The translations under genes and the position numbers were made by a program. The notes under the pieces are model-generated. The model saw only the letters and a list, made by a program, of their open reading frames with translations. It was not told the DNA's origin and ran no database searches. From positions 10,726,001 through 10,790,000 of the forward strand of contig NC_135254.1 in the NCBI RefSeq assembly GCF_964204865.1: a stretch of 64,000 nucleotides of DNA, given 5' to 3'. Origin of the DNA: Styela clava. Taxonomy: Eukaryota. Numbering within the stretch: the first letter of the stretch is position 1; the number at the start of each line of letters is the position of its first letter. Of the stretch, positions 4,289 to 57,993 are shown piece after piece.

Positions 4289-7200
4289 TCAAGCATCATA
4301 TTCATTTTCAGGCATTGAATTAATGTACGGATGTTCTATTGTTTTACCATCATCCATTTCTTCGTATTGATGATCTCTTTCTTTTATTTCCTCATAATTA
4401 TGCGGGATTTCATAATTTCCATCTTTCTCTTCTCTTATCTCATAGTTTCCGGAGTTCAGTTTTGATGTTTGAATTTCATCAAATTGTTCATAAGAACTCG
4501 GGACGTCTTTAACAACGTTATTCATCTCTGAAAGACTTTGTGGTTGAGTTGCGATTTTTTGAGAATTCCTTCTGTGAAGAACAATAAGTTAAAGATATTT
4601 TACATGTAGGCTTTTGAATAAGAAACAATGGATTTTTTTCTTGAATCGCTTCTATTATAGAGGAATTAGGCGTCATTGTGATCGTTGGACACAAAAAACT
4701 AGACGAAAGTGTGAGAGCACATAATCTCAGCCATTATTCCGGACATTGAGATTGGATATGCGGCTGTATAAAAAGTTTCACTTTTCTGACTAAATTTAAA
4801 GGAAATACTAAAAAATTTTAAACATTTTATATACACATTTTATTGTTGTATCGAACAATTCTCACCTCATTACTCTGCATTTACGAATCAGCAAAACAAT
4901 TCCAAATAAAATGGCTGCAAGAATCAATGTGACTATGGATGAGATAATTGCAACCAATAGAATGTTGTGTTCTGCAATATATTTCAATATATAATAAGAA
5001 TCATAAACCTCAATAAATTTATCAGGTGCGACCACAAACAACTACACAACAGTAATGAAAACGGGTAAATATCAGTTGTAAAAACCAGAAAGTCAGTGAG
5101 CATATTGTACCACAAAATAGTAGTTCAGAAAATCGAATTATGCGCACTTGAGACTAATGTCTCTTATAATTTGTAAGCTATATAATCTTACCACTAGAAT
5201 TCGTTGTAGTAGTAGTGATTGCACTGATGGGAGAGAGAATGTTTATCTCCGTAGTTTTTGTGTCATTTGCAATGGCAGACAATGCGGAAGTATGTGTCAT
5301 GTCAGTAGGAGTTGTAAATTCATGATATTTATTTGTTGTTGTCATTTCAACGGTTGAAGGGGTGGGCGTTGTTTCACAGGTAGTGTCTTTTGAACATTTG
5401 GTCGTCTGAAGAAAGTAATTGTGATTTAGCAATATTTCGATTCAATATATGTACGATAATTTTTTATTTATTTCAACGGTTTTTTAAATCTGTATAATGT
5501 TCTTCAAAAAGTTGAACAAATATAAAAATGCTCACAAAAATATTGATTCACATGCTAATGAAAAATATCGAAAGTGAATAATTTAGATGAATCAGAAACC
5601 TTTTTGGTAATTCGTCAATAGCCAGGTCTTGCGACCTGAATCAGAAATATTGAAGATTCACTTTTGAAAGTGCAGCTTATACATTAATATAGTATAAACT
5701 AATAAAAAAACATAGAATGATAATCATTTTTCTTTTAAGCACTTTAGAAGATCAAAAACTATTAAATTACTACAAAAAGTGGCTTTCCCTATTTTTTACC
5801 TCAAAATTAGAACCAATGCAATTATTGGGCCCCATCCTGCTCGAGTCAATGCATGTCCGATTTCTTATTTTCATCATAGAGCTGCAGTAACATAAACTCC
5901 ACGATGACCAGGTTTCCCAGTATTTCCCTACACAGTGTAAACATAATCATACGTACGATTCCTCTTTTTATTGATTTTATTCATGGTCCATATTCCAACT
6001 ATATCATATTCTAAACTTTATGCTCTTTCAATTTGTTGAATCTTACAACTAAATATAGATTCAGAGCCAGGTTTTTTTTGTCATAATTGAAACTAAGTTA
6101 AGTTGGAGTTCGTGTAAATTTATATTCCTTTTCACCGTTTGCGTTATATTAAATCTTATTTTTAACATTTTATACTGTTTTAAGCACACAGCAAAAGTAA
6201 ATTCGCGCTGGAGTTGAATGTATTGAAGCTATGTTGAATAAATATAGCAGTTTGACCTGTCACTTCATCACTTCCTATTTTTTTTTACTTTTATCAGAAA
6301 AATTATGCTAAACATTCGTCTCAACTCGGTTGTCAACAGACATTTTACTCACCGATAATGCGTTGACACACCAATCCTTTCAATCCTGTTGCTCCAGTGT
6401 CACAGTCCATCGTATGCCATAGAAGATTTGCGTCATAAGTTTTTTGTTCACCTATCGATACACAAGTCTGTGTTCCACTATCAGTATCATGATTGTTTGG
6501 TTCCCCTTCATCCCAACGAATGAATGAAAGGTTTGTTCCGTCGTTCCATTTAAACATCGACTTTGATTTGTCATAAACAAGTCCAATGTAGAATGTGTAT
6601 GGTTCTCCTGTAATAAGACATATCATATCGTCACGCTAATAACCGAATTGCGTAAGTCATTTTTGGCGATTTCGAGTTTTTTTTATAAAATAGGTATTTA
6701 TGTAATACTGCGCACCTGTCTGTTAAATCAGATTTTATTTTCAAGAATTCTGAAACCCATAAAAATGGAGATTTAGTATGACATGCACATTTGTGCAATT
6801 GTTTCGTCATAATGAATTATCATTGTTACAACAGGACTATTGTGACGTCACAAAGGAAAATAACCTCAGCGAAGTATTTTCGAGTTTTTGCATCTCGGAT
6901 TCTAGCTTAGCGCGTATTAATTTAAATTTATACTACAGTATAGGAAGACGTGCACTTGTGATATTCACTGTCCGAGTCCAATTCACCTTGGTTGGCTTTT
7001 ATATTGGGTGCATTGCTGTTTTATTCTTTATATTTATTCTTAGTCTAATTTCGGTGGGTGTGCAGGACATGTTATATTGATGAAATATATATTTTTAAAC
7101 ATAAAAAATAATGTAATTGAAACTGATTAGCTATTTTGGGGATTAGACATTGTAGATACTGAGAATTACATTCGTTTTTGGAATGTTTTGTTTTCAGGAC

Positions 7201-10200
7201 TGGTGCATATAGTAAAGTTGCAAAATTGCGTATGTCCCCAAGTCATACACACATTTCTGCCTAAGTCACAGTGCACCATTATGACGTCACTTAACTGCGT
7301 CATACAAATTAACTTAAATCCGGCTACGATCAAAAAATTGAACCATGGCAAATCATTGACTCTCAATGGCATAACAATATCATTAGGAAGTTTTTTACGT
7401 TTTTCTCAAAACTGCTAAAAATGACTTACGCAATTCGGTTATTAGCGTGACGATATTGTTTTATACTGCTAGGGCACGTCTAGACAAGTGTTTTAGCGAT
7501 GATCAATCGGTTGAAGCGTTAGCTCTAACTGTGTTGGCGTAGCAGATTACGCATCTTCGTTTCAACAGCCATCCCACGTCACCCGTGGGTGTAATGAATT
7601 GGTCAGAAAATGCCAAACAGTTATAGAATCTCCCTATATATTGTTAGATATCAGTGGTTTTTGTACAGGTCCGCGTTCGCGTCCTTGTGGGTGTCATATC
7701 CCACAGGGATCGGACTTATTGCATTTCGTTCGTAATGCCATCAACGACCGAAGTTATTATATCGCCGCAATACATACACATTCATTGACTTTCAATACTT
7801 ATAATATTACACGTACCTGATCCATCAAAAATAAGTGTTTTTAGAAATCCTTGAGTAATATCATCCTTTATTAATGCTAATTCACTTTCTTTATTTTTGC
7901 AAAAAGTTTTTGAATCTTTATAAGATCTTGTACTACCACCCGGTGAAACGTAATATTCATAATTTCCATTGGAAAACCAGTTTCCTCGATCTGTTTCACA
8001 AATACATCAAATAATTGAATAATATCAGTAACTTGAAAAATGCACAGTGAAAATGCACGGTGGAACGAGATGGCATCAATTATTGCCGGCACTTACTTCA
8101 ACATACCAAAGTGAAAAATAAAAAGAAACGTTGATATATTAACTCATTTAAATTTTCCGATCATAATCCGTTTTAGCACCTTTCGAATAGAGCGAATAGC
8201 ATAGTAAATAGCACGGCGTGATTCAGTGAAAATATTCGTAACTTTATTACAAAAAGATGTTTGTTTTGACGTGACTTATGTGAAGGAGATTGACCCATTG
8301 TTCATATATATCTTATCTCTTTTTTTGCAACGATTGTAAGAAGTGGTCAGTTTAATGGAAAATGAAGACGTAATAATCTAATTTTAAAATGAGTTATTCA
8401 TTCTCACTCAGTGTAGTCGGAGCTGTGGTCAATGAAGGCATAATTACATTGCAGGAAACGGATGGCGTGCAAATCTAAAAACAACGTTCGATATTTAATC
8501 ATGCATGTAGGTGTTTCAAAACCGAACTAACTATAAGTCCAAAATTCAATATTTCATGTAGAATGATCCAAAAATAGTTTTTCTGCGGCAATGAAATCCA
8601 AATTAATGGGGTCTGGACTGAAGGATTTGCAAGTTACATACAAAATTGGATTATGGAAATATTTTAATACGTCAATCAATCTGTTTAAATAATAACGAAA
8701 TAGACTAAACTGACTTGAATAAATTTACCTGGGTGGCAATGCCAGGTGTAGCTAAATAATATCGTCGATGAAGTTTGAGTACAAAAATCGATCAAACGAT
8801 TGCTATATAATGTAAGCGTGCCTCAACAATGTGTATGAGAAAAAATGTTATTCCCATCTGTTTATTATAGTTTTGGAACGACATGCTAGAACTTTATAAA
8901 ATCCTGAACTTGAATGTAATAGTTATTAATACAGCTAGATAATGAGCAAGAAATTTGATAGGAAACAAATTAATAATGAGTTATATATGTAAATAACGTT
9001 CACTTTGGACTGTGTTGCCGTATCATTGCATGAGTTTGGACCAATCCTTGAGCTGTCAACACAAGTTCGGTTACGCTGCCTTATTCCCGGGCATTCACAA
9101 CTTCCCCAAGATTCCCACGATCCCCAATTCCGGCCTGCAGAAACATACAGAGAAAAAAAGATTTTTATTTTCAACTAATATGATATCAGTAAATTTAAAT
9201 CAAGATAAACTGTTAGCATAGATGTGCGAGGTATAAATAGTGGCAAGATAACAATATTAAAACTTTTAAATCTTATCAGAATCGTTCCTGCACTAATAGG
9301 TAATAGTTAGTTTTGTACTGAATATTTATGATAAAATTCAGCTGGCAGGTTTATAGCATTTTTTTTATTTATCAAAAACTGAAAGTTTTGTTAACAGTAA
9401 ATTAATGATATTGTGCAACTACTTTCTTTAATAAACATAATTTATCCAATTTAAAACATTTAACTATATCTCCAAGTTAGTACCTACACTAAAGTCATAA
9501 GATTTTAACAGGAATGTTTATCTGAGATATCAGGGAGACGCTTTGAGTAATAAAGGCAATGATAATCATATACCAACGCTCACGGGCATACTACAATTCA
9601 AAAGCATTTGAATCAGGGGCCCGCTCACTGCCTCAAATTCGACAATACAAGTGCGAGAATATACTTAGATCGGGTCGGCACGCAGGTTCGAATCAGGGCC
9701 GGATTTAGACGATGTGAATCCCTGGGCCAGGGGCAAGCCCTGTCAAGCGTGCCGAACTTGGCACGCGAGCCCATTTATTCGGCACGCGAGCGAGGCTTCA
9801 GAAACGAAATCATTTTTCTTCCGAAAAAAAGTTTCAATACTCTGAATTATCTGTTGAAACTCTGCTTCCGTTTAATCATTATTGTTTGTTAACAATCCGT
9901 TATTTATTTAAATTCTTTTTGACCATTCATGACATATGGCTTCAAAGAAATATTTTATGACTTCACAACTGAGTGAGCTATCGACAAATTTGGTCGGCAC
10001 GCGGAAGAATTTTGTCATTAAATTCAGTCGATTTTGGCACGCGAGCCGGAAAAGTTGCCCTATGCCTAGGCTATGCTAATTGTAAGGGCCCTCTGTAACA
10101 ATGACGTCACATCAAATCTGTCATAACGACATATAAGTGATTGCAAGTTCTTGTATTATGATATCACAAGTTCAGTTTTTGAATTCTGTGAGTTACAAAC

Positions 10201-13200
10201 GTTTAGCTACCGCCAAGATACTTACGTACAGAACGTCATGGCACCAGAAAAGTCGACTTCATAAAAACTCGTTTATAATGAGCTCTGGCATAGTAAAAAT
10301 TATATGGAATATTACTTACATTCTCGGTTGATTAGATGTATCATTATATACAGAAATATATAGGTATTTTTTTCATAAAATTAAGATATTATTACGTTAA
10401 AAACTGTTCAGGTAGTTAAAAAATTTTTCAAGAGTTTTTCTAAGTTATACATATTCATTTATTCGGTCATATTTCTAATTTTCCAATTTTTCAATCGGTA
10501 AATATTTGGAATTATTACCTTCATTAAAAAAATATGAGAACTATAAAGTTTTAAACTGACATTATTCTGGAACAAGCCTTTACAATTCAAAAACGATTTA
10601 AAATGAATAATAGTTCAAAATTGATTGTCAAGTCCTTCGAAGTTAGAGACCCCAAGACTTTAGCCTACCTTGCCCAATAGTATATTCGGCCCTGGTTCGA
10701 ATCCCATGAGTGATGTGACAATGCGCAAGAGTGTTGGACTTCTCAACGTCATAGGGTGGTTCACGTAATGGCTTATCGGTTGCGTCTTCCTCCGCCGGCC
10801 ACGTTTGCAGACGCCTTGCGCTACAGCCTGAGAAGGCGTGTATGGGCAAGCCATCGATATTTGTGGTGTTTCGACGAGTTTATTGGGAATAAAAAGCAAT
10901 GGCAAGTTTCTACATAAGTTTTTCTTTGTTAGGTTTTAACTTATTAAATACAAAAAAATAACACAGCCATTTTGAACAAAACTGGCAAAAAACTTGACTT
11001 ACAACAATTCTCTTCAAACAAATCTCTGAATATATTGAAGCTATTATGAATAAACATAGCAGTTTTGCCTGTCACCTCATCACCTCATTTATATTTTTAT
11101 TTTTAATATAAGAAAAAAACGCTAAATATTCGTTTTTATTCGCTGTCGCAAGTTATTTCACTCACCGATACGTCGTTGACACACCAATCCTTTTGGTCCT
11201 GTTGCTCCTATGATACAGTCCATCGTATGCCATAGAAGATTTGCGTCATAAGTTTTTTGTTTACCAATCGATACGCAAATCTGTGTTCCACTACCAGAAT
11301 CATGATTGTTTGGTTCTCCTTCATCCCAAAGAGTGAATGAAAGGTTTGTTGCATCATTCCATTGAAACATCGACTTTGATTTGTCATAAACAAGTCCAAT
11401 GTAGAATGTGTATGGTTCTCCTGTAATAAAACATATCATATTGTTTTACAATGCTAGGATATGCTTAGACTAGTGTTTTAGTGAGGGTTAAGCGGTTGAA
11501 GCGTCAGACATAATTGTGATGGCCATGGCATTGCAGGTTATGCATCTCAGTTTCCCGCGCCACCCATGGGTGTAATATTTTGGTCAGACAATACCAAACA
11601 TCAATAGAAGCTCCTTATATATTGTATCTTATAGTTTTGTACAGTGATTTGTTCGAGTAAATAAGCGTTATATCCCGCAAGGAATGAAATTATTGCATTC
11701 CGTTCGTAATGTTATCAACGACCAAAGTTATTATATCGTCGCAGTACAAACATATTTATCGGCTTTAAATACTTAAAAGTAATGCACATACCTGATCCAT
11801 CAGAAATGAGTGTTTTTATAAATCTTTGTGTTATTTCATTCTTTATTAATGCTAGTTCGCCTCCTACATTTTTGCAAAATGTTTTCGAATATTCATAAGA
11901 TCCTGAACTACTACCCGGTGAAACGTAGTATTCATAACTTCCATTAGGAAACCAGTTTCCTCGATCTGTTTCACAAATGAAATATCAAATAAATGAATAA
12001 TATCAGTATCTCGAGAAATTCGCAGTGAAAATGCACGGTGGAACGAGATGGCATCAATTGCAGGCACTTGCTTTAACTTCAATACCGAAGTGAAAAATAA
12101 AGAGAAGCCTTGATATATTCACGCATTTAAATTTTTCGACTTTAAGCCGTTTTAGCACTTTTTGATTAGAGCGAATGGCATAGTAAAAAGCAACGACGTG
12201 ATTCAGTGGAAACATTCGTAACCTAATTACAAAAGAGAAGTTGGCTTCGACGTGACTTATGTGAAAGAGAATAACAAGCCCATTGTTTATATCTCTTTTT
12301 GCAACAATTGTAATAACTGGTCAGTTTGCTTGGAAATGAAGACGCAACAATACAATTTTAAAGTGAAGTTTTCATTCTCACCTGGTGGAGTCGGAGCTGT
12401 GGTCAATGAAGGCATAGTTGCATTACAGGAAGCGTCTGGCGTGCATATCTAAAAGCAACGTTCAATTTGTTCAATCGTACATGTAAGTGTTTGATTGGAA
12501 CTAACCGTAACTCCAGAATTCACGACATTATGAAAAAAGGAAGAATTTTTCCTCAACAATAAAATCGAAATTAATGGTGTCGAGACTGAAGGATTTGCAA
12601 GTCATATTTAAAATTACAATTGGATTATGGGATTATTTTAATACGTTAGTCAATCGGATTCAATTAATAACGAAATACGACTAATAACTGACTTGAATAA
12701 ATTTACCTGAGCGGCAATGCCAAGTGTAGCTTAATATTATTGTTGATGAAATTGAGTACAAAAATCTACCAAACGATAGTGTGCATGCGTAAAAATTTAT
12801 TCTTATTTGTGAGTTATAGTTTTGGAACGAAATCTTAATCAACATGCTACAACTTTATAAAATCCTGAACTTAAATTTAATAGTTATCAATAGAGCTAGG
12901 ATAAGTGCAAGCATTTTGAACGGAAACACAATCAAAATGAGTTATATATGTGAAACAAGTTTACTTCCGACTGTTTTGCCGTATCATTGCATATGTATGG
13001 ACCAATTCTTCCACTGTCAACACAAGTTCGGTTACGCTGCCTTATTCCCGGGCATTCACAACTTCCCCAAGACTCCCATGATCCCCAGTTCCAGCCTGCA
13101 GAAAAATACAGAGTAAAATGAGAGTTAAATTTTTTACAACTAATATGATATCGGTAAATTGTTAATGTAGTATAGACGGTAGAAACAATAGCATAGCTGT

Positions 13201-14535
13201 GCAAAGTATAAATAGTAATAATATGACATTATTGAAACTTTTGAACATTTCCAGAATCTTTCCTACACTCATAACTAATCAAAAGTTGCTAGTTTTGTCC
13301 GAGATACATATGATAAAATTCAGCTGACAGGTTTTGTTCAATTTTCTTCCATCAAAAACAGAAAGTTCTGCTGGCAGTAAATAAATGATATTGTGCAACT
13401 GATTTCTTCAATAAACATAATTTATCTAGTTGAATCTAAAGCATTGGACCTAGATAACCCAATTCTCATTTTCCGTAGAAGAATTTGCCCAAAGAAAAGT
13501 TATAGTCGCACTCACTCGGAATAGGAGATACTCGTATCTTGATTAAAATACGAGGAGTGTAATCTGAAGTAAGGTATTTTGATTTTTGATGGTGCAACAT
13601 ACACTATAGCGAATATCTGTTATATCGAAGTCAATGGCATTAAAATATATAAATAGTTATTTGCATAAAAAGGACATTTTCCACAAATTAAGTATACATT
13701 TATTGCAAACAGAGTTTGTTACCGATTAATCGTTGACAGACAAATCCAGTTGGTGCATTCGCAGCGCATTCGGAGTCATACCACGGTAGATTTGCATGAT
13801 ACGCATGCCACCACCCCATAGCAACACAATGTTCAAGTGGATAACTAGAAGGTTCTCCTGTGTTCCAATTAGTGTAGGTTATTTCTGAATTGTCCTTCCA
13901 TTTGAAGATATTGCTTGTGCCAACTTCCTTCAATCCAATATAAAATCCATATGGTGTTCCTGTAGAAAATAAAATGCTTTGGCGTAATAGAACGTTTTGT
14001 CGTGTGTAATATTTGTTGTGTGGCTGGTTGGGGCTGTTGGACATAATTGAATACATGTGCAAATATACGAAGACTGACGAATTAGAAATATTACGAATTC
14101 AATTAAACAAACGTATGAATGATTCTTGCGCAAATACCAAAACATTTTTATGACTGTGATGGTAAATAACCTTGAGCAAATTCATTTGGAGATTTTGGGT
14201 AAAACGTAAAATGTCCTATTTACCTGAGGTAGCTGAGACTTGATTTTGAATAAACGTTTGAATTTTGCTAGTTTTTATCATTGCCATCTCGCCATCATTG
14301 TTTTTACAGAATAATTTACCATCAGCATTTGATTTTAAATCTCCTTTTCCAGATACGTAGTATTGGTAACTCCCAAGTGCATTCCACTCACCTCTACCTT
14401 GTCGCAAAAATAAACAGTTTATGAATAAGCACATAATTTGAAAGACGTGATGACATATAATATATACCAACCTGCGCTAAGGACGGCAATCGTCCTAGCA
14501 ACTAATCCAATGTATATTAAAAATTTCTCTCTCAT
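4289..14535 (-). CDS. Receptor A1: SP-(CTLD-TSP1)x3-mucin-TM-Tyr-rich activating-type tail, ~819 aa, 15 coding exons
   Basis: Exons 14535-14472 (SP), 14397-14224 + 13959-13723 (CTLD1, EPS/WYD), 13095-12965 (TSP1), 12448-12382 (linker), 11965-11792 + 11420-11166 (CTLD2, EPN), 9134-9004 (TSP1), 8474-8408 (linker), 7990-7817 + 6607-6353 (CTLD3, EPN), 5927-5800 (TSP1), 5405-5192 (Thr-rich), 4971-4866 (TM ILLVAIISSIVTLILAAILFGIVLLI-RKCR), 4571-4289 (tail). All introns are GT-AG with compatible phases; total 2460 nt, no internal stop seen. Confidence 0.88.
6628..7453. mobile_element. Non-autonomous DNA transposon (MITE), TA target duplication
   Basis: TIR tcgtcacgctaataaccgaattgcgtaagtcattttt at both ends with TA on each side. 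The empty site catatcata|ttgtttt is in the paralogous intron near 11440. Confidence 0.9.
10655..10865 (+). mobile_element. tRNA-derived SINE-like element
   Basis: Pol III B-box GGTTCGAATCC at 10694-10704 with an A-box-like motif upstream. GC-richer than the flanks. A second copy is on the opposite strand at ~56035-56245. Confidence 0.6.
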
Positions 14536-15824: not shown

Positions 15825-16698
15825 TATATGTCCATTTCGTGTTCACAATTTGCACGAGGCTCTATTGCATTCAAATAACCATTTTTGATTGTTACTGCAG
15901 ATTTCAAGATTAGACACCGGGCTGTCATCCTCTGTATGCCAACAACAAACGATAATGTTACTTGAGCATAGCGATCAATTAGACTTCTTTTGCCACAATG
16001 ACATATTCATCACCTTTAGGAACAGTAACTGTCCTTTGTATTCTATTCTGACTGCCGTGGTCTTATCAATTTCCTCATATACATCCTGTTCACATGATTT
16101 AAAACTTGGATTGACGGGTGTTTCAACCTTAATGTAGTCATCTTCAAGACTCCCTTCTTCAGCTAGACATTGACGGAGTGCGCTCGAGACTACTTTGATT
16201 GTTGATTCACTTTGTATTTCAGCGAAAATTTCGTTTCGACTATCCACAGGAGAATTTCTATCGTCTATTAATATTGGTATTGTAGGTAAAATCATATTCT
16301 TTATGACAAATTTATTCTTATTTGAAACATTGTTGAGACTTTCTTTAGTTCTCCGGGATTCTTCGGTCTCTGTAGATTTTTGCTCGTATTCTATTGCACT
16401 ATATGGCATAATATCATTTCCTTTTTTTATGCCTGTGGCTTTGGGTAAGGTCGGCAAAGTACTGCGCTACAATATTTTGATTATGCTACTATTTTTGGTC
16501 TTTCTTCTCATTGAATTTTGTTTTGTTAGGATAACTTCCGGCGGCAGTACAACCTATAATGACACAGTTTTCATTTCCGCCATTATTATTGGGTTCTCCA
16601 GTAAAACATTTTTCATAAGATTCAATCTCGCCATCAATCCACGCAAAGAAGTTATTTCTCACTTTTTGTAAACCAATAAAAAAGCCATATGGCATATC
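15825..16698 (-). pseudogene. Remnant of a third receptor class: half CTLD exon (EPN) fused directly to a Tyr-motif cytoplasmic exon
   Basis: Acceptor tgtacag| then MPYGFFIGL...WIDG...GEPNNNGGNENCVIIG, running out of frame into a hydrophilic tail-like ORF (PYSAI, DYIKV, VYEEI) with stops and frameshifts. Paralog at 31660-33790. Confidence 0.7.
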
Positions 16699-23500: not shown

Positions 23501-24925
23501 TGCTTTCTCTAATAAACATAATTTATCCAGTTAAATTTGAAACATCTGACCCAGTTAACCCAATTCTCATTTTTTTTGTAGGAGAATTTACTCAAAGAAA
23601 AGTCAGTCGCAATCACTCGTAAAATGTAAACTAGTGTCTGATTAAAATGCGGGCAGTCACAGAGATGCCAAGTGCTACTGAAATCAAACGGTATTTTGTT
23701 GGTGCAATAAGCAACAGCGAATACCTGATGATGTGATACTTTAAGCACTTTAAATCAATGCTATAATAAACTACGAGGCAGTAAACATGGCATGAATAAA
23801 ATTTACTAAATTGGAGTCAAATGTCATTAAAATATATAAACATTTATTTATATAAAGAAATAGGAATTGAGTGGCAAATTTAGTATACATTTATTACAAA
23901 CAAAGTTTTATACCGATTACTCGTTGACAGACAAATCCAGTTGGCGAATTCGCAGCGCAACTGACGTCATACCACGGTAGATTTGCATGATACGCGTTAA
24001 ACCACCCCATAGCAACACAAGGTTCAGGTTTATCACTAGACGGTTCTCCTGAGTTCCAGTTAGTGTAAGTTAGTTCCGAATTGTCATTCCATATGAAGGT
24101 ATTGTTTGTGCCAACTTCTTTCAATCCAATATAAAATCCATAGGGTTGTCCTGTAGACAATAAAATGCTTTAGAGCAGAATTTCCCAAACTTAGCTTAAT
24201 TGAGCAGTAAAAAGCATTAATGACGTGTGTGTTGCTACATAGATGAAACATTATCCTTCCTCATCCTTTCTCCTGGTTAGACACATAAATTGATTCGGCA
24301 TACGATAGGGGTCCGACAAAACTAAGATTCACAAATAGGGGTACGCGACCTAAAAAGTTTGGGAAACCCTGCTTCAGATTAATGGAAAGTTATGTAAGGT
24401 TGTATGTAAACAAGGCTGATTAGGACTGTTGGACATAATTGAAAACAGGTGCAAATATGTAAAGACTGTCGAATTAAAAATTGTCACACAAACGTATTGA
24501 GAATTCTAACACAAATTCCGAAACGCTTGAACAAAGATAAAGACCATAATGTTAAATAACCTTAAACAAATTCATTTCGGGATTTGGGGTAAAACGTGAA
24601 ATGTCCTGTTTACCTGAGGTAGCTGAGACTTGATTCTGAATAAATGTTTGAATCTCGCTAGTTTTTATCATTGCCATCTCACCATCATTGTTTTTACAGA
24701 ATGTTTCGCCATCAGCATATGGTTTTATATCATCTTTTCCAGATACGTAGTATTGGTAACTTCCAAATGCATTCCACTCACCTCTATCTGGTCGCCAAAA
24801 TAAAGAGTTTGTGAATAAGCACATAATATGAAAGACCGGATGATATATGATATATACCAACCTGCGCTAACGACGGCAACCATCCAAGCAAATATCCCAA
24901 CGAATATCAAAAATTTGTCTTTCAT
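20574..24925 (-). CDS. Receptor I1: SP-CTLD-TSP1-mucin-TM-ITIM/ITSM tail, ~556 aa
   Basis: Exons 24925-24862, 24787-24614, 24150-23914, 23168-23038, 22251-22050, 21851-21701 (TM IIGPVVGTIGGFLLLALIIVYIL-SKQLKKR), 21581-21484, 21187-20574. GT-AG, phases compatible, 1671 nt. Tail motifs AIYTAV, TQYAVV, VVYETV, VTYATV. Confidence 0.85.
22322..22783. mobile_element. Possible solo LTR
   Basis: TGT...ACA ends with an imperfect terminal inverted repeat (tgtgatgtcg / cgacattaaca), ~460 bp, absent from paralog I2. No TSD found. Confidence 0.4.
24176..24371. mobile_element. hAT-type MITE in intron 2, shared by both inhibitory-type genes
   Basis: Ends cagaatttcccaaactt...aagtttgggaaaccctg with a degenerate 8-bp TSD (ctttagag/cttcagat). 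Matching copy at 44171-44356; absent from A1, A2 and the 30-kb pseudogene. Confidence 0.75.
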
Positions 24926-27342: not shown

Positions 27343-27409
27343 GTATTATTTCATTATTATGACTTTTTTTAGAAAATTTACTGAAAATAAGGTTACTCAT
27401 ACAGGTATA

Positions 27410-37500: not shown

Positions 37501-38125
37501 AATGTACTGAAACCTATGGACAGAGGGCATGTTCACTTGGCTAACACAGACAGTCCCAATCTCGCAATAGAACTAAAATAGGGGGAAATCGGAATAATAT
37601 TATGGCCTAACCCTAACCTGGTACACACACTACGGGAGTAGCCAACCAGATGTATAACATAATATTAGATAATCAACAGTTACTTCCAGAAGCAACATGG
37701 CTCGTAGTTGGGTAAGCATTAGTAGGTTTATTCATCAGTCTGAACCTGTTTTTCTGCTACTAATCCAATAAATATGTGATATTGATTATAGTTTAATTTA
37801 ACTTTCCCACCCTTATTTAATATTGTCAATATTTGCATATGGGTCATCGTTTACTTCAATGTCAGCCCCTTCAGCATCTCCTGTGACATCGGAATTCTGA
37901 TCTGTTACAGGTTTATTGACCGTTGCATAAGTTACTTCATTGAAGTTTGAAGAATCATCTTTTTTGGGTTTCTGTACAACAGCAAGGGTCCCTTTATTGA
38001 GTTTCTGATGCATCTGCCGAATCCAAATCTTTTGAGGATTTGGATAACTTTTTCGATTTTGTCTTGTTTACAGCAGTATATATAGCATTGGCGTTGCCTT
38101 CTGGGGTCACATCGTTTATCTGATT

Positions 38126-41100: not shown

Positions 41101-41880
41101 GAATGCCATCACTTTATAACGTGATTACTCGAGAATGAAAAACTATCATTCAATATAGCTGTGTATAAATTTGACATTGAGTTCAAGCTACACTACAGTA
41201 AAAAATTGCAGATAAAATAAACAACCACGACGACAAGAAAATCATAAAATGTACACGTTAAATATTTAGCTACTTCATACCTCATTGCGACTGCCAGCGC
41301 ATGCATCGGGTCCTGTTCGCGGAGAATTAATGCATGTGCGATTTCTCAATTTGATTATGGTTGAGCAGTTACATTCACTCCAAGAAGACCAGGTTCCCCA
41401 GTATTTACCTATATTGGAACTGTTATTTTTTTATAAATGCAATCAGCTAGATAGTAATATATATAGATATACAAAGGGGGTTTTCAGCAAAGTTCTAACT
41501 TTCTAACAAACTTTTTTGCAAAATGTTCTCGAATCTTCATAAGATCCTGAACTACCACCTGTTGAAACATAGTATTCATAACTCCCATTAGGAAACCAAA
41601 TTCCTCGATCTGTTTCACAAAAGAAATATCAAATAATAGAATAACGAGAATATCGGTCGGAGACCGAAGACTTATCCGTTGAAAGTTAGGGGATCCCCCC
41701 AAACAGCGATCTTACTCCACAGTGACACTTTGTGTCCCGTCACTAAATATTTAATAACTTGCTAATTATACTACATAATTTGCCCAAAATCAATAGGCTT
41801 CTGGTCCGAGATATGATAAACGTACAAGCAAAATCTGAAGCAGATTTAATCTCGCTTTCGTTAGATATCGCGTGCATCTA

Positions 41881-41949
<69 letters not shown>

Positions 41950-42987
41950 TACCTATCAACATACTTACCGATTAAAATCGATAAGTAATGACAGTATCTC
42001 GAAAAATGCGCAGTGAAAATGCGTGAGCTAGTGAAAACATTTGAAAAATAATTAAAAAAAATACGTTGGCTTTGGGGTGACTTATATGGGAGCGAATAAC
42101 AGAGCCCATTGTTCATATCTTATCTCTTTTTCCCGACAATTACGATAAGTGTCGAGTTTGATGGAAAATGAAGACGTAACAATCTAATTTTAAAATGGGT
42201 TTTTCATTCTCACCTTGTGGATTCGGAGCTGTGGTCAATAACAACATAGTTGCATTGCAGGAAGCGGATGGCGTGCATATCTAAAATCAACGTTCAATTT
42301 GTTCAATCGTGAATGTAGGTGTTTTAACCAAACTAAATTTAAGTCAAAAATTTAATATTTAATGTAGAATGATCAAAAAATGATTTTTCTCTGGCAATAA
42401 AATCCGAAATAGTTGGGTCCGGACTGAAGCGTTCGCAAGTCACATTCAAAATTGGATTATGGAAAGATTTTGAGATGTTAATCAATCTGTTTGAATTAGT
42501 AACAAAATACGACTAAACTGACTTGAATAAATTTACCTGGGTGGCAATTCTAGGTGTAGGTATTAATGTCGTCGATGAATTTGGGGACAAAAATCTACAA
42601 AACGGTTGCTATATAACGTAATTGAGTCTCAACATGGATATGTATGGAAATTTTTATTTTATTTTATTGGGAAGTTAGGTTTCAAACGACACACTAATCG
42701 ACATGCTAGGACCCTATAAAATCCTAATTTAAAATGTAATAAATATCAATACAGCCAGGTAATAAGCAAGCATTTCGAGCGGAAACACAATCATAATGAG
42801 TTATATACAGTGGTGGAATTCAGCCGGTTCGCAACGGTTCTATGGAACCGTCTCACGGAATTTTATGAGATCAGCTAACCGGTTAGCATTACTGGTTACT
42901 GTCAATGTTCTGTTTGTACCAGAACCGGCTGAAAAATATGACTTTTGTGAAGGAACTGGCTGAAAAAAAATTTGAATTTCATCACTG

Positions 42988-43029
<42 letters not shown>

Positions 43030-44906
43030 AAACAATTTTACTTCCGACTGTGATGCCGTATCGTTGCAAGCGTATGGACCAATTCTTCCGCTGTCAACAC
43101 AAGTTCGGTTACGCTGCCTCATTCCCGGGCATTCACAACTTCCCCAAGACTCCCATGATCCCCAATTCCAGCCTGCAGAAACATGTAGATTGAAATAATA
43201 GTTATATATTTCACAACCGAGTATTTCGAAGCAGTATGATATCAGTAAATTTAAATCAAGATGAACTGTTGATACAATATGAGCGGTAGAAAAAATAGCA
43301 TAACTGTGCAAAGTATAAATAGCGATGAGATGACATTATGAAAACTTTAAAACATTATCAAAATCTTTCCTGCACTCATAGCTAATCAAAAAAAGTTTTG
43401 TACTAAATATTTTAGATGAAATTCAGCTGACAGGTTTTTGGCGGTTTTATCGAAAACTGAGAATTCTTCTGACAGTAATTTAATGATATTGCGCAACTGC
43501 TTTCTTTAATAAACTTAATTTATCCAGTTTAATTTAAAACATCGGTCCCGGTTAACCCAATTCGCAATTTTTGGTAGGAGAATTTACTCAAAGAAAAGTC
43601 AATCGCAATCACTCGAAAAATGTAAACTAGTGTCTGATTAAAATGCGGGCAGTCGCAGAGATGCCAAGTCCTACTGAAATCAAACGGTATTTTGATGGTG
43701 CAATAAGCAACAGCGAATACCTGATGATGTGATACTTTAAGGACTTTAAATCAATGCTATAATAAACTACGAGGCAGTAAACATGGCATGAATAAAATTT
43801 ACTAAATTGGAGTCAATGTCATTAAAATATATAAATATTTATTTGTATAAAGAAATAGGAAATGAGTGGCAAATTTAGTATACAATAATTACAAACGAAA
43901 TTTTTTACCGATTACTCGTTGACAGACAAATCCAGTTGGCGAATTAGCAGCGCAATTGACGTCATACCACGGTAGATTTAAAAAATAAGCGTTAAACCGC
44001 CCCATAGCAACACAAGGTTCAGGTTTATCACTAGACGGTTCTCCTGAGTTCCAGTTAGTGTAAGTTAGTTCCGAATTGTCATTCCATATGAAGGTATCGT
44101 TTGTGCCAACTTCCTTTAATCCAATATAAAATCCATAGGGTTGTCCTGTAGACAATAAAATGCTTTGTAGCAGAATTTGCTAAATTGAGCAGTAAAAAGC
44201 ATTAATGACGTGTGTGTTGCTACATTGATGAAATATTATCCTCCCTCCTCCTTCCTCCTGGTTCGACACATAAATTGATGCGGCATATGATAGGGGTCCG
44301 ACAAAACCACGATTCACAAATAGGGGTACGCGACTTAAAAAGTTTGGGAAACCCTGCTTCAGATTAATGTAAAGTTATGTAAGGTTGTATGTAAACATGG
44401 CTGGTTAGGACTGTTGTACATAATTGAAAACAGGTGCAAATATGTAATAAATGACGAATTAAAAATTCTCAAACAAACTTATTGAGAATTCTAACCCAAA
44501 TCACGAAACGCATGAACAAAGATAAAGACCATAATGTTAAATAACCATAAGCAATTTCATTTCGGGATTTGGGGTAAAACGTGAAACGTCCTGTTTACCT
44601 GAGGTACCTGAGACTTGATTCTGAATAAATGTTTGAATCTCGATCGTTTTTATCATTGCCATCTCACCATCATTGTTTTTACAGAATGTTTCACCATCAG
44701 CATATGGTTTTATATCATTTTCTCCAGATACGTAGTATTGGTAACTTCCAAATGCATTCCACTCACCTCTATCTTGTCGTAAAATAAAGAGTTTATGAAT
44801 AAGCACATAATTTGAAAGACGTGATATATAATATATACCAACCTGCGTTAACGACAGCAATCATCCAAGCAAATAATTCAGTGTATATCAAAAGTTTCTC
44901 ATTCAT
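38126..44906 (-). CDS. Receptor I2: SP-CTLD-TSP1-linker-TSP1-long mucin-TM with tail truncated before the ITIMs (~682 aa); decoy or pseudogene
   Basis: Exons 44906-44843, 44772-44599, 44145-43909, 43172-43042, 42280-42214, 41408-41281, 40830-40005, 39220-39070, 38950-38853, 38298-38126 (premature TAG). The model requires skipping a broken CTLD exon starting at 41609. Remnant tail sequence continues to 37813. Confidence 0.65.
41881..41947. repeat. (ACAG)n microsatellite inside an intronic insertion (~41658-41987)
   Basis: About 16 perfect units; the surrounding insert is absent from the paralogous intron near 12005. Confidence 0.95.
42808..42987. mobile_element. hAT-type MITE followed by a (TA)n microsatellite (42990-43026)
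   Basis: TIR cagtggtggaattca / tgaatttcatcactg; near-perfect 8-bp TSD gttatata/attatata. Confidence 0.8.
44171..44356. mobile_element. hAT-type MITE, same insertion as 24176-24371
   Basis: Same sequence and same intron position as in I1. Confidence 0.75.
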
Positions 44907-47324
44907 TTCCGCGGCTAAATATATAACATTTCTAACTTTCCCCATAACATTACAATTTGAATACGAAAATTGAAATAAAACAAGAATGGTGTGTATTTGC
45001 GAGCTGCGAACGCTTTCATCTTTCTCTTTAATAAAAAATGAGAATATTTGAATAAGTGTTTGGTTAGGTTTGAAAACTAACAACAAATTTGTCTATATAC
45101 CGTGACTTAACGCCCTGATTGTGAATGCAGCTTTGTTTAATTCAGCAGAGAATCCTGTGGAAAACTAACGTCATAAACTTTTCATGACAACATTAAAACA
45201 TCAAAAGCTATGACCTATTAGATAACACTACTAAATTTCTTCCAAAGCTAATAATACAACTTTATGCAATACTTATGAATGGGTGATTTGTTTGCCCACA
45301 ATAACATTGAATATAATTATTCGAAAATCTTCGATACTATTTTGAGTACACTGCGACTAATTATCAAATTTCTATCCACATTACTTTCAGTATCAGAAGA
45401 ATGATGCAGCTGAAACCTTAATTCGACTCGCCAGGATGAAATCATAAGCAATATGATATAACATTTGTTAGATCAGTCAGTTAGATCTGACAGTTCTTAT
45501 CTTACAATAACTAAGTCTAATATGAGTAATAAAGGTAATATTTTTATAAATGCAAAAATAAATAACATTTTTGTGGGGGACAGAATGAAACTTCCTATTA
45601 CGAGTGGGATGTTTCAATAACCTTTAAAGAAAAGATTAACGACGAATATGCTTCAGAAGACGAAACCTATTACAAAGCTACTTAGCAATGTTATAGCATT
45701 ATTCAGTCACTTATGTTCGTGTTATATATTGAGCAAAGCTTATTCATATAGAAACATCGTGGCATATTAAAAACTGATAACACGCAGATATCGTATTGTG
45801 GAAAATTAACAGGGTTGGCCTAATACTATTTATTGGAATTTCTACGCAACAATTAGTTAATATTCTGAAAATACCTGAATTATATTTTATTATACGAAAT
45901 GTTTCGAATATTGGCCAAATTGTTTTCATATGATATTCTTGATTCTGGTTTCACCAATCAAATCCATTTATTCGCCTATGTTGAAAATAATATTTTTTCA
46001 TCGTCTGTTCGTCTTTGTAGTATATGACTAGGAACTCACAAAATAAATAATATTTATTTCACTACTGACACATATAAACACTTGAATGAATGAATGAATG
46101 AATGAATGAATAGCTTGTTTGCTACATTGATTGGCTCATTAATTGCGCTTTGACTTCTACTGCAGTAGCCACGATAACCATTACTATGGCCTTCTTACTA
46201 AGGAAATGCATGTCGAGAAAACAACAACGAAGAATATGATTAATCTAAGCAGGACGAAGATGGAAATGACACGTACCACAACTATTAGAATAATACATGA
46301 ATATCATGACAACTTTATAAGCAAAGCCAAGTAAAGCGATGAATATTGTGGGCTATACTAGAGTTTTAACCAAATAGATGTATAGTAATCTCTTGTGACC
46401 GACTGCTGTGCTATCGTAAATAGCAGAAGGATTATTGAACCATTATTAAAGATACATTATTTGATATTTGTAGAAAAACTATTCATTCATAAAATATTAA
46501 ATTCATGAGTTCAAATCAATTGCGTTTTGTGGAACAAAAAAAAATATTCATAAAATTCCGAAATTTGTGTTGAAATAAATGAACGATTGTTGGTAAATGA
46601 GATGAATTCAGGTTTTAAGTTACAGAACAAAAAAAATTAAATTATATTTAACAACATGATTTCTCGAATATCATTTTTTTCCTAAGAGGTGTAATTAGAC
46701 ACTTTTATTTTCCATTGCAGAAATGAGTGTAACATTACGATGATGACTTGTGCAACAAACACTATTTTCTGAAAGTAGAAGTGTGAGCTACATATTTAGT
46801 GACGACTTGTGTTTATTTGGTATGTGTATGTGATTCGTTCAATCTATTCGAATTTGAGCCAGTTTTGGGGAAAGTTTAACGAAATTTGATTCCAAATTCA
46901 AGATTATATATCGTGAACTGTATTTTAGAGATACACTAAAATAACTGTTAACGTTCTGGCATTTGCGAAAATGATTCACTGGAATAATTAGTCATAAAAA
47001 CGAACCTTGGTGATCCTCTCGCATTTAATTGATCATAGTATAGTTAAATCTGTATTCAATTTGCATTTGTTCGTTTATCATTGCATCTTAGCCACCTGTG
47101 CTGTATATTTGGAAAATATGAGCATTTCGCACTGTGACTAAATATCCTCAAGTATTTATCAATTCTTTGAAACAAGTTTCTTTAAAATGTTTTGGTATTT
47201 TTATTATTCATTTTGTTTACAGAGCGTTTAACGTTTTTCAGAGCTAATCATTTTTACTGCTAGTTACATCCGCAAAGCATTACAATCTATATTTGAATTT
47301 TGTCAGTTTATATGATTCAGAAGA

Positions 47325-54366: not shown

Positions 54367-57300
54367 TTAATTGATGTACGGATGTTCTTTTGTTGTGCTA
54401 TTATTCATTTCTTCGTATTGATGATCTCCGTCTTTTATTTTCTCATAATTATGCGGGATTTCATAATTTTCTTCTTTCTCTTCTCTTAACTCATAATTTC
54501 CGGAGTTCAGTTGTGATGTTTGAATTTCATCAAAGTTTTCATAATAACTCGGGACGTCATTAACAACCCTATTCATCTCTGAAAGACGTTGTGGTTGAGT
54601 TGCGATTTTTTGAGAATTCCTTCAGTAAACAAAAAATAAGTTAGAATTAATTAATAAGTAGGATTTTAAATAAGAAACATTGGATTTGTTTTCGGAATTG
54701 CTTCTACCATAGAGGAGTTAGACAAAACAATCGACGAAAATGTTAGAGCCCAGTATTGCAGACATTGTCCCAGACATTGAGATTGCGCATACAGCTGTAT
54801 AAAGAGACACACCTTACTGATTCAATTAAGAGTGAATACTCCAAATTTTCGGAAAATATACACATTTTGTTGTAGTATCGAACATTTCTCACCTCATTTT
54901 TTTGTTTCTACAAATCAGCGAACCAATTCCAAATAGAATGATTGCAAGAATCAATGTGACTATGGATGAAATAATTGCAACCAATAAATTGTCGTGGCCT
55001 GCAATATATTTCAACATATAGTAAGAAGAAGCATAAACGTTAAAAAAATTATCAGCATTGAACACAGGTTAAACATGAGAATCAGAAAGTCAGTGAGCAT
55101 TTTATGTAACCACAAAATAGTAGTTTTAAAAACTCTGATTTTGTGCACTTAAGACTAATGTCTCTTATAATTTGTAAGCTATATAATCTTACCACAAGAA
55201 GTCGTTGTAGTAGTAGTGATTGCACTAGAGGGAAAGAAAATGTTTATCTTCGTAGATTCTGTGTTATTTGCATTGGCAGACAATGTGGAAGTATGTGTCA
55301 TGTCATTGAGAGTTGTAAATTTATGATAAATATTTGTTGTTGTCATTTCAGCAGGCGCCGCGGTGGACGTTGTACTACAGGCAGTGTCTCTTGAACAATT
55401 GGTCGTCTGAAGAAAGTAATTGTGTTTAGCAATTTTTCGATACAATATATGTACGATAATATTTGTATATTCCAACATTTATTTAAATCCGAAGTTTAAT
55501 GGTTGGACGTTCTTCAAAAAGTTAAACAAATTTAAAAATGCTCACAAAAATATTAATTCACACGCTTATGAAAAATAACGTCGGGCGCCCTGAATAAGAA
55601 CTACTAGATATTCACTTTTACGACTGCGGCTTATACGCTGTGAAATAGTAAAAACTATTCACACAACATAGAATGATGATCCTTTTTTTTTGAACCTTTT
55701 AGAAAATCAGAAATTATTAACTTACTACAAATAATGGCATTTTTTTTATTATTTCTTACCTCAAAATTAGAACCAATGCAAATATTGGGCCCCGTTCTTC
55801 CCGAGTCAATGCATGTTCGATTACGTACTTTCATCATTGAGCTGCAGTTACATGTACTCAACGATGACCAGGTTTCCCAGTATCTTCCTGCACAGTGTAA
55901 AGATTTAAAACAAAAGTTTTTTTGCCTGTTTTGATTAGAATGGCTGTATTTTTGTACGTAGTAAATAGGTTTAAACTTAAATAGGAAAAATTGCCAATTG
56001 CTTCTTATTCGCAATAAACCCTTCGAAACTCTACAAATATCGATGACTTGCCCATACACGCCTTCTCAAGCTGTAGTGCAATACGTCCGCAAACATGGTC
56101 GGCGGAGAAAGACGCAAACGATAAGCCATTAAGTGAACCACTCCGTGTCGACGAGAAGTCCAACACTCTTGCACATTGTCACATCCCTCATGAGATTCGA
56201 ACCAGGGGCGACTATACCATTGGGCAAGGTAGGCTAAAGCCTTGAAGCCTCTAACCTCGTAGGCCTTAACAATCAATTTTAAGCTCATATTCACTGTAAA
56301 TCCTTTTTGAATTGTGAAGCCTTCAGAGTTCCAGAATAATGTCACTTTAAAACTTTATATTTTTATTATTCACGGTAATAATTCCAAATATTTACCGATT
56401 GAAAGATTAAAAAATTTGAAATATGGCCGAATAAATGATTTTGTAATAATACATCAACTTGAAATCCCTATTATGTTATATCCCATGGTTTAAATTTGTC
56501 CCAGATTCGAACCTGCATTCCAGCCGATCTAAGTATATTCTCCATTATTGTATTAATGCACTTGTTTTGTCGAATTTACAAGCGGTGACCGGGCTCCTGA
56601 TGCAAATGTCTTTAGATTGTAGTAGGCCCGTGAGAGATGTTACATGATTTTTCTTTTTTTTTACTCAAAGCGTCTCCCTGATAACTCAGATAAACATTCC
56701 TGTTAAAATCTTACGACTTTAGTGTTGGTACTAAGTTGGCGATATAGTTGCACAATGACAGTGAAACTTGAAGCAAACATTATAATAATCATTTATGCAC
56801 TAATATTTAATCAAGAGTAGTTAGTTTTGAACGGAATATTTATGATAGAATTCATAGTCGCACTCACTAGGAATAAAAAAAAATCGTATCTGATTAAAAT
56901 ACGGGCGGTCGCTGAAATGCCAAGTGCCACTGAAATCATACCGTATTTTGTTGGCGCAAAGAGCAACAGCGAATACCTGTTGATGCGATACTTGAAGTTA
57001 TTTAAATTAATGTTATAAAGTTTAAGTAAAATAACGATCAGTAAACATTGGTATGATTTAAATGAACTAAATTAAAGTCAATGGCATTAAAATACATAAA
57101 TAGTTATTTGTATAAAGAAAAAATGACATAATCTACAAATTAAGTAGACTTATTACATTAAAAGTTTGTTACCGATTAATCGTTGACATACAAATTCAGT
57201 TGGTGCATTCGCAGCGCAATCGACGTCATACCACGGTACATTTGCAAAATACGCGTTAAACCACCCCATAGCACCACAAGATTGGGTACTCTCACTAGAA

Positions 57301-57993
57301 GGTTCTCCTGAGTTCCAGTTAGTGTAGGTTAGTTCTGAATTGTCATTCCATATGAAGGTATTACTTGTGCCAACTTCCTTCAATCCAATATAAAATCCAT
57401 AGGGTTGTCCTGTGCACAATAAAATGCCTTATCTTAGGGTAACGTTTTGTCGTGTGTAATATTTATCCAATATGAACATGGCTGATTGGGGCTGTTGAAC
57501 ATAATTGGAAACATGTGCGAACACTTGAATACTGATGAATTAAGAATTCATAAACCAATGTATGGAGATTTCTCGCGCAAATCCCAAAACCCATGAGCAA
57601 AAGATTCTAATGACCATGATGATAAATAACCTTAAGTAAATTCATTCAGGGATTTGAAATAAAAAGTGAAATGTCCTATTTACCTGAGGTAGCTGAGACT
57701 TGATTCTGAATAAACGTTTGAATCTCGCTCGTTTTAATCATTGCCATCTCACCATCATTGTTTTTACAGAATGTTTCACCATCGGCATATGGTTTTATAT
57801 CATCTTTTCCGGATACGTAATATTGGTAACTTCCAAATGCATTCCACTCACCTCTACCTGGTTCGCAAAAATAAAAAGTTTATGAATAAGCAAATAATTT
57901 GAAAGACATGATATATAGTATATACCAACCTGCGTTAACGACAGCAATCATCCAAGGAAATAATCCAATGTATATAAAAAGTTTCTCCTTCAT
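54367..57993 (-). CDS. Receptor A2: SP-CTLD-TSP1-mucin-TM-activating-type tail, ~391 aa
   Basis: Exons 57993-57930, 57857-57684, 57409-57173, 55887-55760, 55406-55193, 54998-54893 (TM), 54619-54367. The ancestral last acceptor is mutated (cag>ctg); an in-frame aag 3 nt downstream is assumed. The tail is 9 aa shorter than in A1. Confidence 0.75.
56035..56245 (-). mobile_element. tRNA-derived SINE-like element (copy of 10655-10865)
   Basis: Reverse-complement match including the B-box GGTTCGAATC. Confidence 0.6.

Follow-up and report, generated by a model that had tools for sequence, protein, structure and literature searches.

Does a tandem array of lectin-like genes in the ascidian Styela clava encode one family of ectodomains joined to two opposing kinds of tail? 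The question is raised by a 64,000-nucleotide stretch of the chromosome-scale contig C5 (NC_135254.1; 10.726-10.790 Mb, in a 377-Mb assembly), the whole of which is called the window here. On its minus strand, which carries all receptor exons of the window, four type I receptor genes (A1, I1, I2 and A2), a pseudogene fragment (X) and debris were identified. The original prediction, made from the letters of this DNA, was that these genes form a paired-receptor complex acting in immunity or self/non-self recognition, in which a shared ectodomain of CTLD (C-type lectin-like domain) and thrombospondin type 1 repeat (TSP1) is joined either to an activating-type tail (A) or to a tail with ITIMs (immunoreceptor tyrosine-based inhibitory motifs; I). 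The observation was confirmed and the interpretation was partly supported. The locus holds one ectodomain family with two tails, not recently homogenised pairs. The explanation that we favour, and to which we would give an even chance from what can be read in the sequence, is a lineage-restricted, tandemly amplified type I receptor family whose opposing I and A tails would set a recognition threshold.

Receptor genes, domains and tails

The four genes and their exons, by position in the window, are as follows.

4289..14535, minus strand: gene A1, three-CTLD A-type, 13 exons, exact spliced match of RefSeq P0154 (753 aa); exons 14535-14472, 14397-14224, 13959-13723, 13095-12965, 12448-12382, 11965-11792, 11420-11166, 7990-7817, 6607-6353, 5927-5800, 5405-5192, 4971-4866, 4571-4289
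20574..24925, minus strand: gene I1, single-CTLD I-type, 556 aa, 8 exons, from splice reading and RefSeq P0172; exons 24925-24862 signal, 24787-24614 CTLD exon 1, 24150-23914 CTLD exon 2, 23168-23038 TSP1 (distal type), 22251-22050 stalk, 21851-21701 transmembrane, 21581-21484 juxtamembrane (98 nt), 21187-20574 I tail
38126..44945, minus strand: gene I2, I-type with CTLD, two TSP1, long mucin stalk, transmembrane segment and truncated tail, exact matches of RefSeq P0151 and P0015; isoform X1 exons 44945-44843, 44772-44599, 44145-43909, 43172-43042, 42280-42214, 41408-41281, 40830-40755, 40652-40005, 39220-39070, 38950-38853, 38298-38126
54367..57993, minus strand: gene A2, single-CTLD A-type, 391 aa, 7 exons, from splice reading and RefSeq P0159; exons 57993-57930 signal, 57857-57684 CTLD exon 1, 57409-57173 CTLD exon 2, 55887-55760 TSP1 (proximal type), 55406-55193 cysteine pair and mucin stalk, 54998-54893 transmembrane, 54619-54367 A tail

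The ends of the span originally proposed, 4289-57993, were found to be the A1 stop and the A2 start codon. In both the A2 and the I1 model every intron is GT..AG and there are no internal stops. RefSeq P0159 (216 aa, beginning with a Met inside the TSP1 exon) is an exact match to the last four A2 exons, and P0172 (430 aa) matches I1 exactly from a Met at 24010 in CTLD exon 2 through all later exons; the exons upstream of these points are intact and in phase. The same joins are present in full-length RefSeq paralogues of A type (P0024 and P0158) and of I type (P0014, P0167, P0169 and P0171), and the A2 model is 88% identical to P0158 over its full length. One small I1 exon, the juxtamembrane one, had been missed in the original prediction.

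A search of the assembly with tail exons revealed an array of ~340 kb (10.51-10.85 Mb on C5) with at least 16 A-tail places and 8 I-tail loci, and no A or I tail match outside contig C5. The sequence read amounts to 264 kb (10.50-10.70 Mb and the window), the rest of the cluster being known from tail matches. In these 264 kb the tail type of 17 distal-CTLD genes could be assigned: 12 have an A tail and 5 an I tail, interspersed and all on the minus strand, in keeping with the proposal of two unrelated tail classes in one tandem cluster. Divergent relatives with the same ectodomain plan were found on two other chromosomes (P0091, P0174 and P0149) and on C5 (P0104).

The plan of the proteins is a signal peptide, one to several CTLDs (two exons each), a TSP1 after each CTLD, a Thr/Ser-rich mucin stalk and one transmembrane helix; all of these elements are present in the gene models and support the type I CTLD-TSP1-mucin architecture that had been predicted. 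The Pfam check suggested with that prediction gave Lectin_C (PF00059) on full-length family proteins at 53-127 bits (cut-off 22.6); in the window the domain is split, profile positions 3-36 falling in CTLD exon 1 and 39-106 in exon 2. TSP_1 (PF00090) scored 32.7 bits (cut-off 21.6) on P0014, where two stretches together span profile positions 2-49 of 49, and was borderline elsewhere, below the cut-off on P0024 (17.1 bits) and on a single exon (20.8 bits). The TSP1 exon ends in phase 0 and its last two cysteines are supplied by the next exon, which begins the stalk in some cases (TxNCxxDxxC) and is a short linker in others (ICTPSASC...); the TSP1 of complement C7 was aligned to that of the family with an E value of 1.6e-4.

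In the 17 distal CTLDs the framework cysteines (..ETFC.., ..PCVAM.., ..DV(S/E)C.. and ..FVCQR..) and the WIGL-type motif FYIGL are invariant, and the nearest solved relatives are CTLDs of the mannose-receptor family (E 2.7e-21). The sugar site of the distal CTLD reads EPS (or EPH, EPT, QPS) and WYD, compared with EPN/QPD and WND in sugar-binding C-type lectins, so that the domain is lectin-like and its binding of sugar is doubtful; the proximal CTLDs of A1 have EPN and lack WND. The cassette made up of CTLD exon 1, CTLD exon 2, TSP1 and linker both starts and ends in phase 1, which allows the number of CTLDs to vary in frame (one, two, three or more) and TSP1b to be left out together with its linker, as in the RefSeq model of A1. 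Three Lectin_C stretches were found by Pfam in the A1 protein, and the gene contains an extra TSP1 exon (~9135-9001) and linker exon (~8474-8406) that the RefSeq model passes over. An AlphaFold model of the A-type protein P0024, made with a 14-sequence family alignment, was of low confidence (mean predicted local distance difference test score 46.5; CTLD core 73-80, variable loops <50, stalk and tail <30); at that confidence it depicts a disordered stalk and tail and one long transmembrane helix.

Elsewhere in the cluster, a ~15-kb A-type gene (C5 10619669-10634938, loci L012-L014) was found to have four proximal CTLD cassettes with repeated TSP1 and stalk exons, which points to cassette amplification ongoing within a gene. 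The A2 tail exon (10780343-10780633) is matched with equal score at 10793729-10794019, 13.4 kb on and just beyond the window, and an identical 216-aa protein stands under two RefSeq accessions (XP_077969263.1 and XP_077969351.1); these two observations place A2 within a very recent segmental duplication.

The I tail, of ~240-280 residues, bears up to six conserved Y-A-(T/V)-V repeats. In the seven RefSeq I proteins with complete tails, aligned throughout, these repeats are AIYTAV, TQYAVV, VVYATV, PTYATV, VT(Y/L)AVV and VTYATV. With the ITIM consensus taken as (S/I/V/L)xYxx(I/V/L), one to four matches were found per I protein, and the TQYAVV position is an ITIM or an immunoreceptor tyrosine-based switch motif (ITSM) in six of the seven complete tails; P0167 has one ITIM, and TQYAFV at the TQYAVV position. 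A single ITSM accompanies the ITIMs in many of the tails. The I1 tail contains AIYTAV, TQYAVV, VVYETV and VTYATV, the last three of which had been read correctly in the original prediction and are conserved in paralogous I tails; its three ITIM/ITSM matches compare with 0.40 expected in composition-preserving shuffles (P about 0.005). Most I tails end with DPYANI, a YxN motif, which is among the last ~17 residues of the paralogues that an early stop removes from I1. By the presence of at least one ITIM the I tails would rank as inhibitory members, as had been proposed; this fails for I2, where the motifs are lost, the tail ending before any ITIM/ITSM and the tail match containing stops and a deletion.

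The A tail, of ~90 residues, is acidic and carries YEIP, YE(E/K)I-x6-YEEM and YIN. All three had been listed in the original prediction; YEIP and YIN were present in 14 of 14 A tails examined, and YE(E/K)I-x6-YEEM (shuffle P 0.018) in 13. The motif tyrosines are nearly invariant in these 14 A tails and in the seven full-length I tails. The established preferences of Src homology 2 (SH2) domains match pYEEI to the Src family, pYxxM to PI3K p85 and pYxN to Grb2, which suggests that the YEEI, YxxM and YxN sites of the A tail are docking sites for Src, PI3K and Grb2.

One ectodomain family, two tails, and what may explain them

How far is the ectodomain shared? CTLD exon 1 of A2 (57857-57684) and that of I1 (24787-24614) are read in the same frame and encode an identical 57-residue peptide, preceded by a split codon that gives G in A2 and D in I1, just as first described. 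Between the two exons there are 7 nucleotide differences, each of them synonymous (proportion of synonymous differences, pS, 0.216; of nonsynonymous differences, pN, 0), and the shared peptide departs from the most frequent residue of the 17 distal CTLDs at two positions only. With seven synonymous changes and no nonsynonymous one, the identity is attributable to purifying selection. Recent gene conversion was considered as its cause and rejected, the synonymous divergence of 0.216 being at or above the family mean.

Over the whole CTLD, 124 of 137 residues are identical between I1 and A2 (90.5%). The figures fall to 22/54 in the stalk and 6/22 in the transmembrane segment and the tails are not alignable, which bears out the dissimilarity of these exons noted in the original prediction. 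Across the 17 distal CTLDs no position was found that tells A from I by its residues. On a maximum likelihood tree of these domains tail type needs two changes, and a single clade of all I ectodomains was not rejected (approximately unbiased test, p=0.075). A2 stands among the A genes (91/91); an origin of A2 as an I/A chimera was not supported, as its whole CTLD takes this position and, at synonymous sites, exon 1 of A2 is at least as far from I1 as from an A paralogue. The marks of paired receptors, related ectodomains (CTLD 90.5%) on different tails in one cluster, are present, with the genes interspersed over ~340 kb.

The region GEPSS...WYD, which is the canonical ligand-binding face (long loop and beta3-beta4), was fixed before the ratios of nonsynonymous to synonymous substitution (dN/dS) were calculated. 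For its 28 codons dN/dS was 1.82, with pN>pS in 100 of 120 gene pairs, these values being pairwise counts on non-independent paralogues with recombination ignored. The rest of the CTLD gave 0.37, the A tails 0.60 and the stalk about 0.9. In a sliding window all values >1 were located within codons 72-97, with the peak at codon 93. A dN/dS of 2.09 obtained for 'variable codons' was discarded as circular. Diversifying selection on the CTLD loops is indicated, short of proof, and the CTLD framework is under purifying selection.

On the explanation that we favour, the distal CTLD would bind a variable, probably non-carbohydrate ligand through its diversifying long-loop and beta3-beta4 face, upon which Src-type kinases would phosphorylate the tails. 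Once phosphorylated, the I tails would damp the cell by recruiting SHP/SHIP-type phosphatases, and the A tails would recruit Src-family, PI3K p85 and Grb2-type SH2 proteins, leading to activation, adhesion or uptake; in this way a recognition response, most plausibly in haemocytes, would have its threshold set by the interspersed A and I genes.

Several findings weigh against this explanation. The ectodomains are not near-identical, as the original prediction had them: the TSP1 repeats of I1 and A2 share 22 of 41 residues (54%) and are of different types, distal in I1 and membrane-proximal in A2, so that the claim of a shared CTLD-TSP1 ectodomain holds for the CTLD (90%) and not for the TSP1. 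Four of the five I genes form one clade on the distal-CTLD tree (95/94), unlike recently homogenised vertebrate pairs, and accordingly nothing points to homogenisation still at work between A and I genes. Nor are the two classes in a 1:1 ratio, ~16 A tail exons standing against 8 I tail exons in the array, and decay has affected several copies, among them X, the I2 tail and fragments of a third, C class. The canonical ITAM (immunoreceptor tyrosine-based activation motif) is Yxx(L/I)-x6-8-Yxx(L/I); the A motif YxxI-x6-YxxM has M in place of L/I and is ITAM-like only. No charged residue was found in the transmembrane segment of the A genes (LLVAIISSIVTLILA..) or in that of I1. The A genes have neither of the two marks of an activating member, a charged transmembrane residue or a canonical ITAM; the label 'activating-type' keeps its tyrosine motifs and denotes motif resemblance alone. 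The terminal DPYANI of most I paralogues means that I-tail function may be mixed, and all tyrosine motifs also fit generic YxxPhi sorting signals. RefSeq starts both I1 (P0172) and A2 (P0159) at internal Met codons, so that the join of CTLD to tail in these two genes depends on splice reading and on paralogues. To these points must be added the counting limits given above for the loop ratios.

The fit to YxxPhi, which extends to YEEI, YEKI, YAVV and YATV, is central to the rival that survives best, namely that these are endocytic or scavenger lectins of the mannose-receptor kind whose two tails serve different trafficking routes. The closest solved and annotated CTLD relatives are indeed of the mannose-receptor family, A1 is named 'macrophage mannose receptor 1-like' in RefSeq, and multi-CTLD forms exist (A1 and, at 10.62-10.63 Mb, a copy whose proximal CTLDs number at least four). 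We nevertheless regard this rival as unlikely. Neither a ricin or FNII domain nor an FxNxxY motif was found, the distal CTLD lacks the EPN/WND sugar-site residues, and the I repeats fix V/T at position -2 (VxYAxV, TxYAVV), a feature that is specific to ITIM/ITSM and unneeded for AP-2; moreover, two discrete, conserved tail classes on interchangeable ectodomains would be unexpected for plain uptake receptors.

Somewhat less probable again is recognition or adhesion of a non-immune sort, such as gamete self-sterility, larval settlement and gregariousness, or tunic and matrix functions, with the loops driven by sexual or kin conflict. A tandem family found in this species alone, with fast-evolving loops, is a pattern also typical of reproductive recognition genes, and TSP1 and the neighbouring von Willebrand factor type A (VWA) genes are matrix or adhesion modules. 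ITIM/ITSM arrays together with YEEI/YxxM/YxN combinations are, however, characteristic of immunoreceptor signalling, and the ascidian self-sterility genes known to us have an unrelated architecture. In Botryllus, tails of this sort are carried by allorecognition receptors expressed in the vasculature (PMC12582321), which also counts against this alternative.

That the array is largely a decaying segmental duplication, with coincidental motif likeness and no coordinated A/I function, is very improbable: the stop in X, the stops and deletion in the I2 tail, the early stop in I1, the C-class fragments, an orphan tail exon, the truncated RefSeq models for I1 and A2 and a tail dN/dS of 0.6 (moderate constraint only) can be cited for it, but most copies have open frames and canonical splice sites, the motif tyrosines are kept in A and I tails, the CTLD framework is at 0.37 with the binding loops alone >1, and several RefSeq isoforms exist per locus.

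Decayed copies, neighbouring genes and repeats

The following further features were located in the window.

2193..2489, minus strand: orphan second A1 tail exon, intact, 95% protein identity, downstream of the annotated A1 stop
15982..16692, minus strand: fragment of a third class (C-class) of receptor; tblastn of P0110 covered residues 151-197 and 594-782 alone
28785..28921, no strand: assembly gap of 137 N, the sole N run of the window, intergenic, flanked by the start codon of I1 (24925) and the last recognisable exon of X (29584)
29584..30460, minus strand: pseudogene fragment X; CTLD exon 1 30273-30100, CTLD exon 2 29820-29584
31822..32380, minus strand: second C-class fragment, P0110-like
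37816..38067, minus strand: leftover I-tail coding sequence after the I2 stop, with VTYATV and DPYANI, out of the gene frame; from the open reading frame list and tail query residues 192-235

The defects of X are a 12-nt deletion in its signal exon and an in-frame stop in CTLD exon 1, and no exon beyond CTLD exon 2 was found up to the assembly gap. By analogy with I1, its TSP1 exon would be expected ~745 nt below 29584, which falls within the gap. The gap itself belongs to the right arm of a duplication in inverted orientation (27408-27511 = 29017-28922; 27652-28014 = 28784-28416), its counterpart in the left arm being a ~140-nt low-complexity stretch. None of the exon joins in the four receptor genes spans the gap, and pseudogene X is the only gene affected.

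RefSeq P0110 (782 aa), the reference for the C class, has a CTLD, a mucin, a transmembrane segment and a ~450-residue tail with IYAEI, VYEEI and EYAIV. In the fragment at 15982-16692 a partial CTLD is directly followed by the end of a long tyrosine-rich tail, and both C-class fragments (partial CTLD and last ~190 tail residues) look like pseudogene remnants. The orphan A1 tail exon is held in a 1.1-kb tandem duplication (1364-2503 versus 3463-4602, 96.5% nucleotide identity) and could be an alternative terminal exon or debris.

The isoforms of I2 differ in the stalk and in the juxtamembrane exon. Between its linker and second TSP1 exon, at 41487-41711 on the minus strand, I2 retains what is left of a proximal CTLD exon 1, degenerate and with a broken frame; the gene seems to be descended from one with two CTLDs. 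Microsatellites in I2 introns (41793-42119 and 42843-43037, minus strand) appear as (SVCL)n and (YI)n in translated open reading frames.

Two plus-strand genes with a VWA domain, at 47794-50500 and 60756-64000, are arranged head-to-head with I2 and A2, respectively; Pfam VWA matched their first exons at 38.6 and 40.6 bits. The counterpart intergenic region upstream of I1 (25.5-27.4 kb) ends at the inverted repeat and gap, and broken off in this way the I1 unit seems to be without a VWA gene. A repeat of ~0.7 kb is shared in opposite orientation by an A1 intron (9462-9654 and 10445-10921) and the A2 region (56749-56558 and 56449-55973), the latter copy being inside the 1285-nt intron that separates CTLD exon 2 from TSP1. 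The repeat probably represents a mobile element, and no Pfam match was obtained for its longest open reading frame.

Relation to known receptors and significance

The family has no name in the sources searched, as the original prediction had suspected. Searches of 1.84 billion and 5.8 billion proteins found the same architecture in no other species, all family matches being from S. clava, with the limit that Botryllus or other styelid proteomes may be missing from these databases. The nearest outside protein is a Clavelina CTLD-mucin-transmembrane protein without TSP1, followed by mannose-receptor-like multi-CTLD proteins at ~35% identity. RefSeq labels the family genes 'uncharacterized' or 'mannose receptor 1-like', and literature searches by locus name and architecture found no published description of the family, of the CTLD-TSP1-mucin-transmembrane architecture or of its two tails. 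We class the locus as a cluster of paired-type receptors with tyrosine motifs, built on a scaffold that is new.

The comparison with vertebrate paired clusters (KIR, LILR, Ly49/NKG2, Siglec-5/-14, CEACAM1/3, Fc-gamma RIIA/IIB) is close in organisation. These too are tandem, fast-evolving genes in which related binding domains stand on an ITIM/ITSM tail or another tyrosine-motif tail, with copy-number expansion, pseudogenes and tail-truncated derivatives; in CEACAM3 and Fc-gamma RIIA, as in the Styela A genes, the non-inhibitory member has tyrosine motifs of its own and no adaptor pairing. There is, however, no homology: Ly49/NKG2 are CTLD proteins in type II orientation and the remaining families are Ig-like, whereas the Styela genes are type I CTLD-TSP1-mucin receptors. 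The Styela A tail also differs in having no canonical ITAM and no charged transmembrane residue, and the Styela A and I CTLDs, 90% identical and mostly segregating on the tree, are not near-identical. To judge by the gene models, the resemblance is most likely a functional analogy, assembled independently.

Within the Styelidae, the Fester/FcoR receptors of Botryllus schlosseri are likewise type I and clustered, in clusters of variable copy number, and clustered Botryllus receptors with ITIM and hemITAM tails mediate allorecognition, with homologues of Src, Syk, SHP-1, SHIP, PI3K and Grb2 being expressed (PMC12582321). FcoR tails contain ITIMs and activating-type motifs, their '(A/D)VYxxV' or YxxI/L/V cores resemble the Styela VVYATV, TQYAVV and AIYTAV, and alternative splicing alters the tails, a further likeness (PMC12582321). 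The differences are that the Botryllus ectodomains are Ig-like and sushi, that hemITAM is present there and absent from the Styela receptors studied here, that no search detected sequence homology, and that Styela clava is solitary, without colony fusion.

Mannose receptors (MRC1, MRC2, PLA2R, DEC-205, FcRY) provide the best CTLD matches and are type I with tandem CTLDs, of which A1 has three. Unlike them, at ~35% identity, the Styela proteins gave only Lectin_C and TSP_1 in Pfam, without ricin-type or FNII domains, and have TSP1 between the CTLDs, a mucin stalk, 1-3 CTLDs per gene of the window compared with 8-10, and different tails, in which FxNxxY was not found. The Clavelina lepadiformis proteins P0134/P0199 and the Styela C-class protein P0110 share ~50% identity over CTLD exon 2 and the layout of signal, CTLD, mucin and transmembrane segment; they differ in lacking TSP1 and in their tails, which are short or unrelated and without A/I modules. 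BsCD94-1 and CiCD94-1 are, like the present proteins, CTLD receptors, and those of ascidian blood cells thought to bind non-sugar ligands (reviewed in PMC5465252), but they are type II with a single CTLD, and without TSP1, mucin stalk, these tails or a two-tail cluster.

Tunicates are the sister group of vertebrates, and to our knowledge their recognition receptors share no homology with those of vertebrates. We also know of no identified receptors for the contact reactions of solitary ascidians. Both allogeneic and xenogeneic contact reactions of haemocytes occur in these animals (reviewed in PMC5465252). A more specific and decidedly speculative proposal, which we consider improbable as it stands, is that the cluster might encode the germline receptors of the allogeneic haemocyte 'contact reaction' in solitary styelids, integrating I and A inputs in a missing-self-type manner on a CTLD-TSP1 scaffold, independently of KIR/Ly49 and of FcoR.

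Whichever explanation holds, the exon-cassette structure of these genes is a clear example of in-frame variation in domain number. If the favoured explanation is true, an independently assembled CTLD-TSP1 family with alternative tails would be a further convergent case of paired receptors, and the second in one ascidian family, on a scaffold other than that of Botryllus FcoR. Tyrosine-motif tail modules would then be the reusable part of paired systems, and the Styela genes would offer concrete candidates for the receptors of haemocyte contact reactions, an old problem in solitary ascidians.

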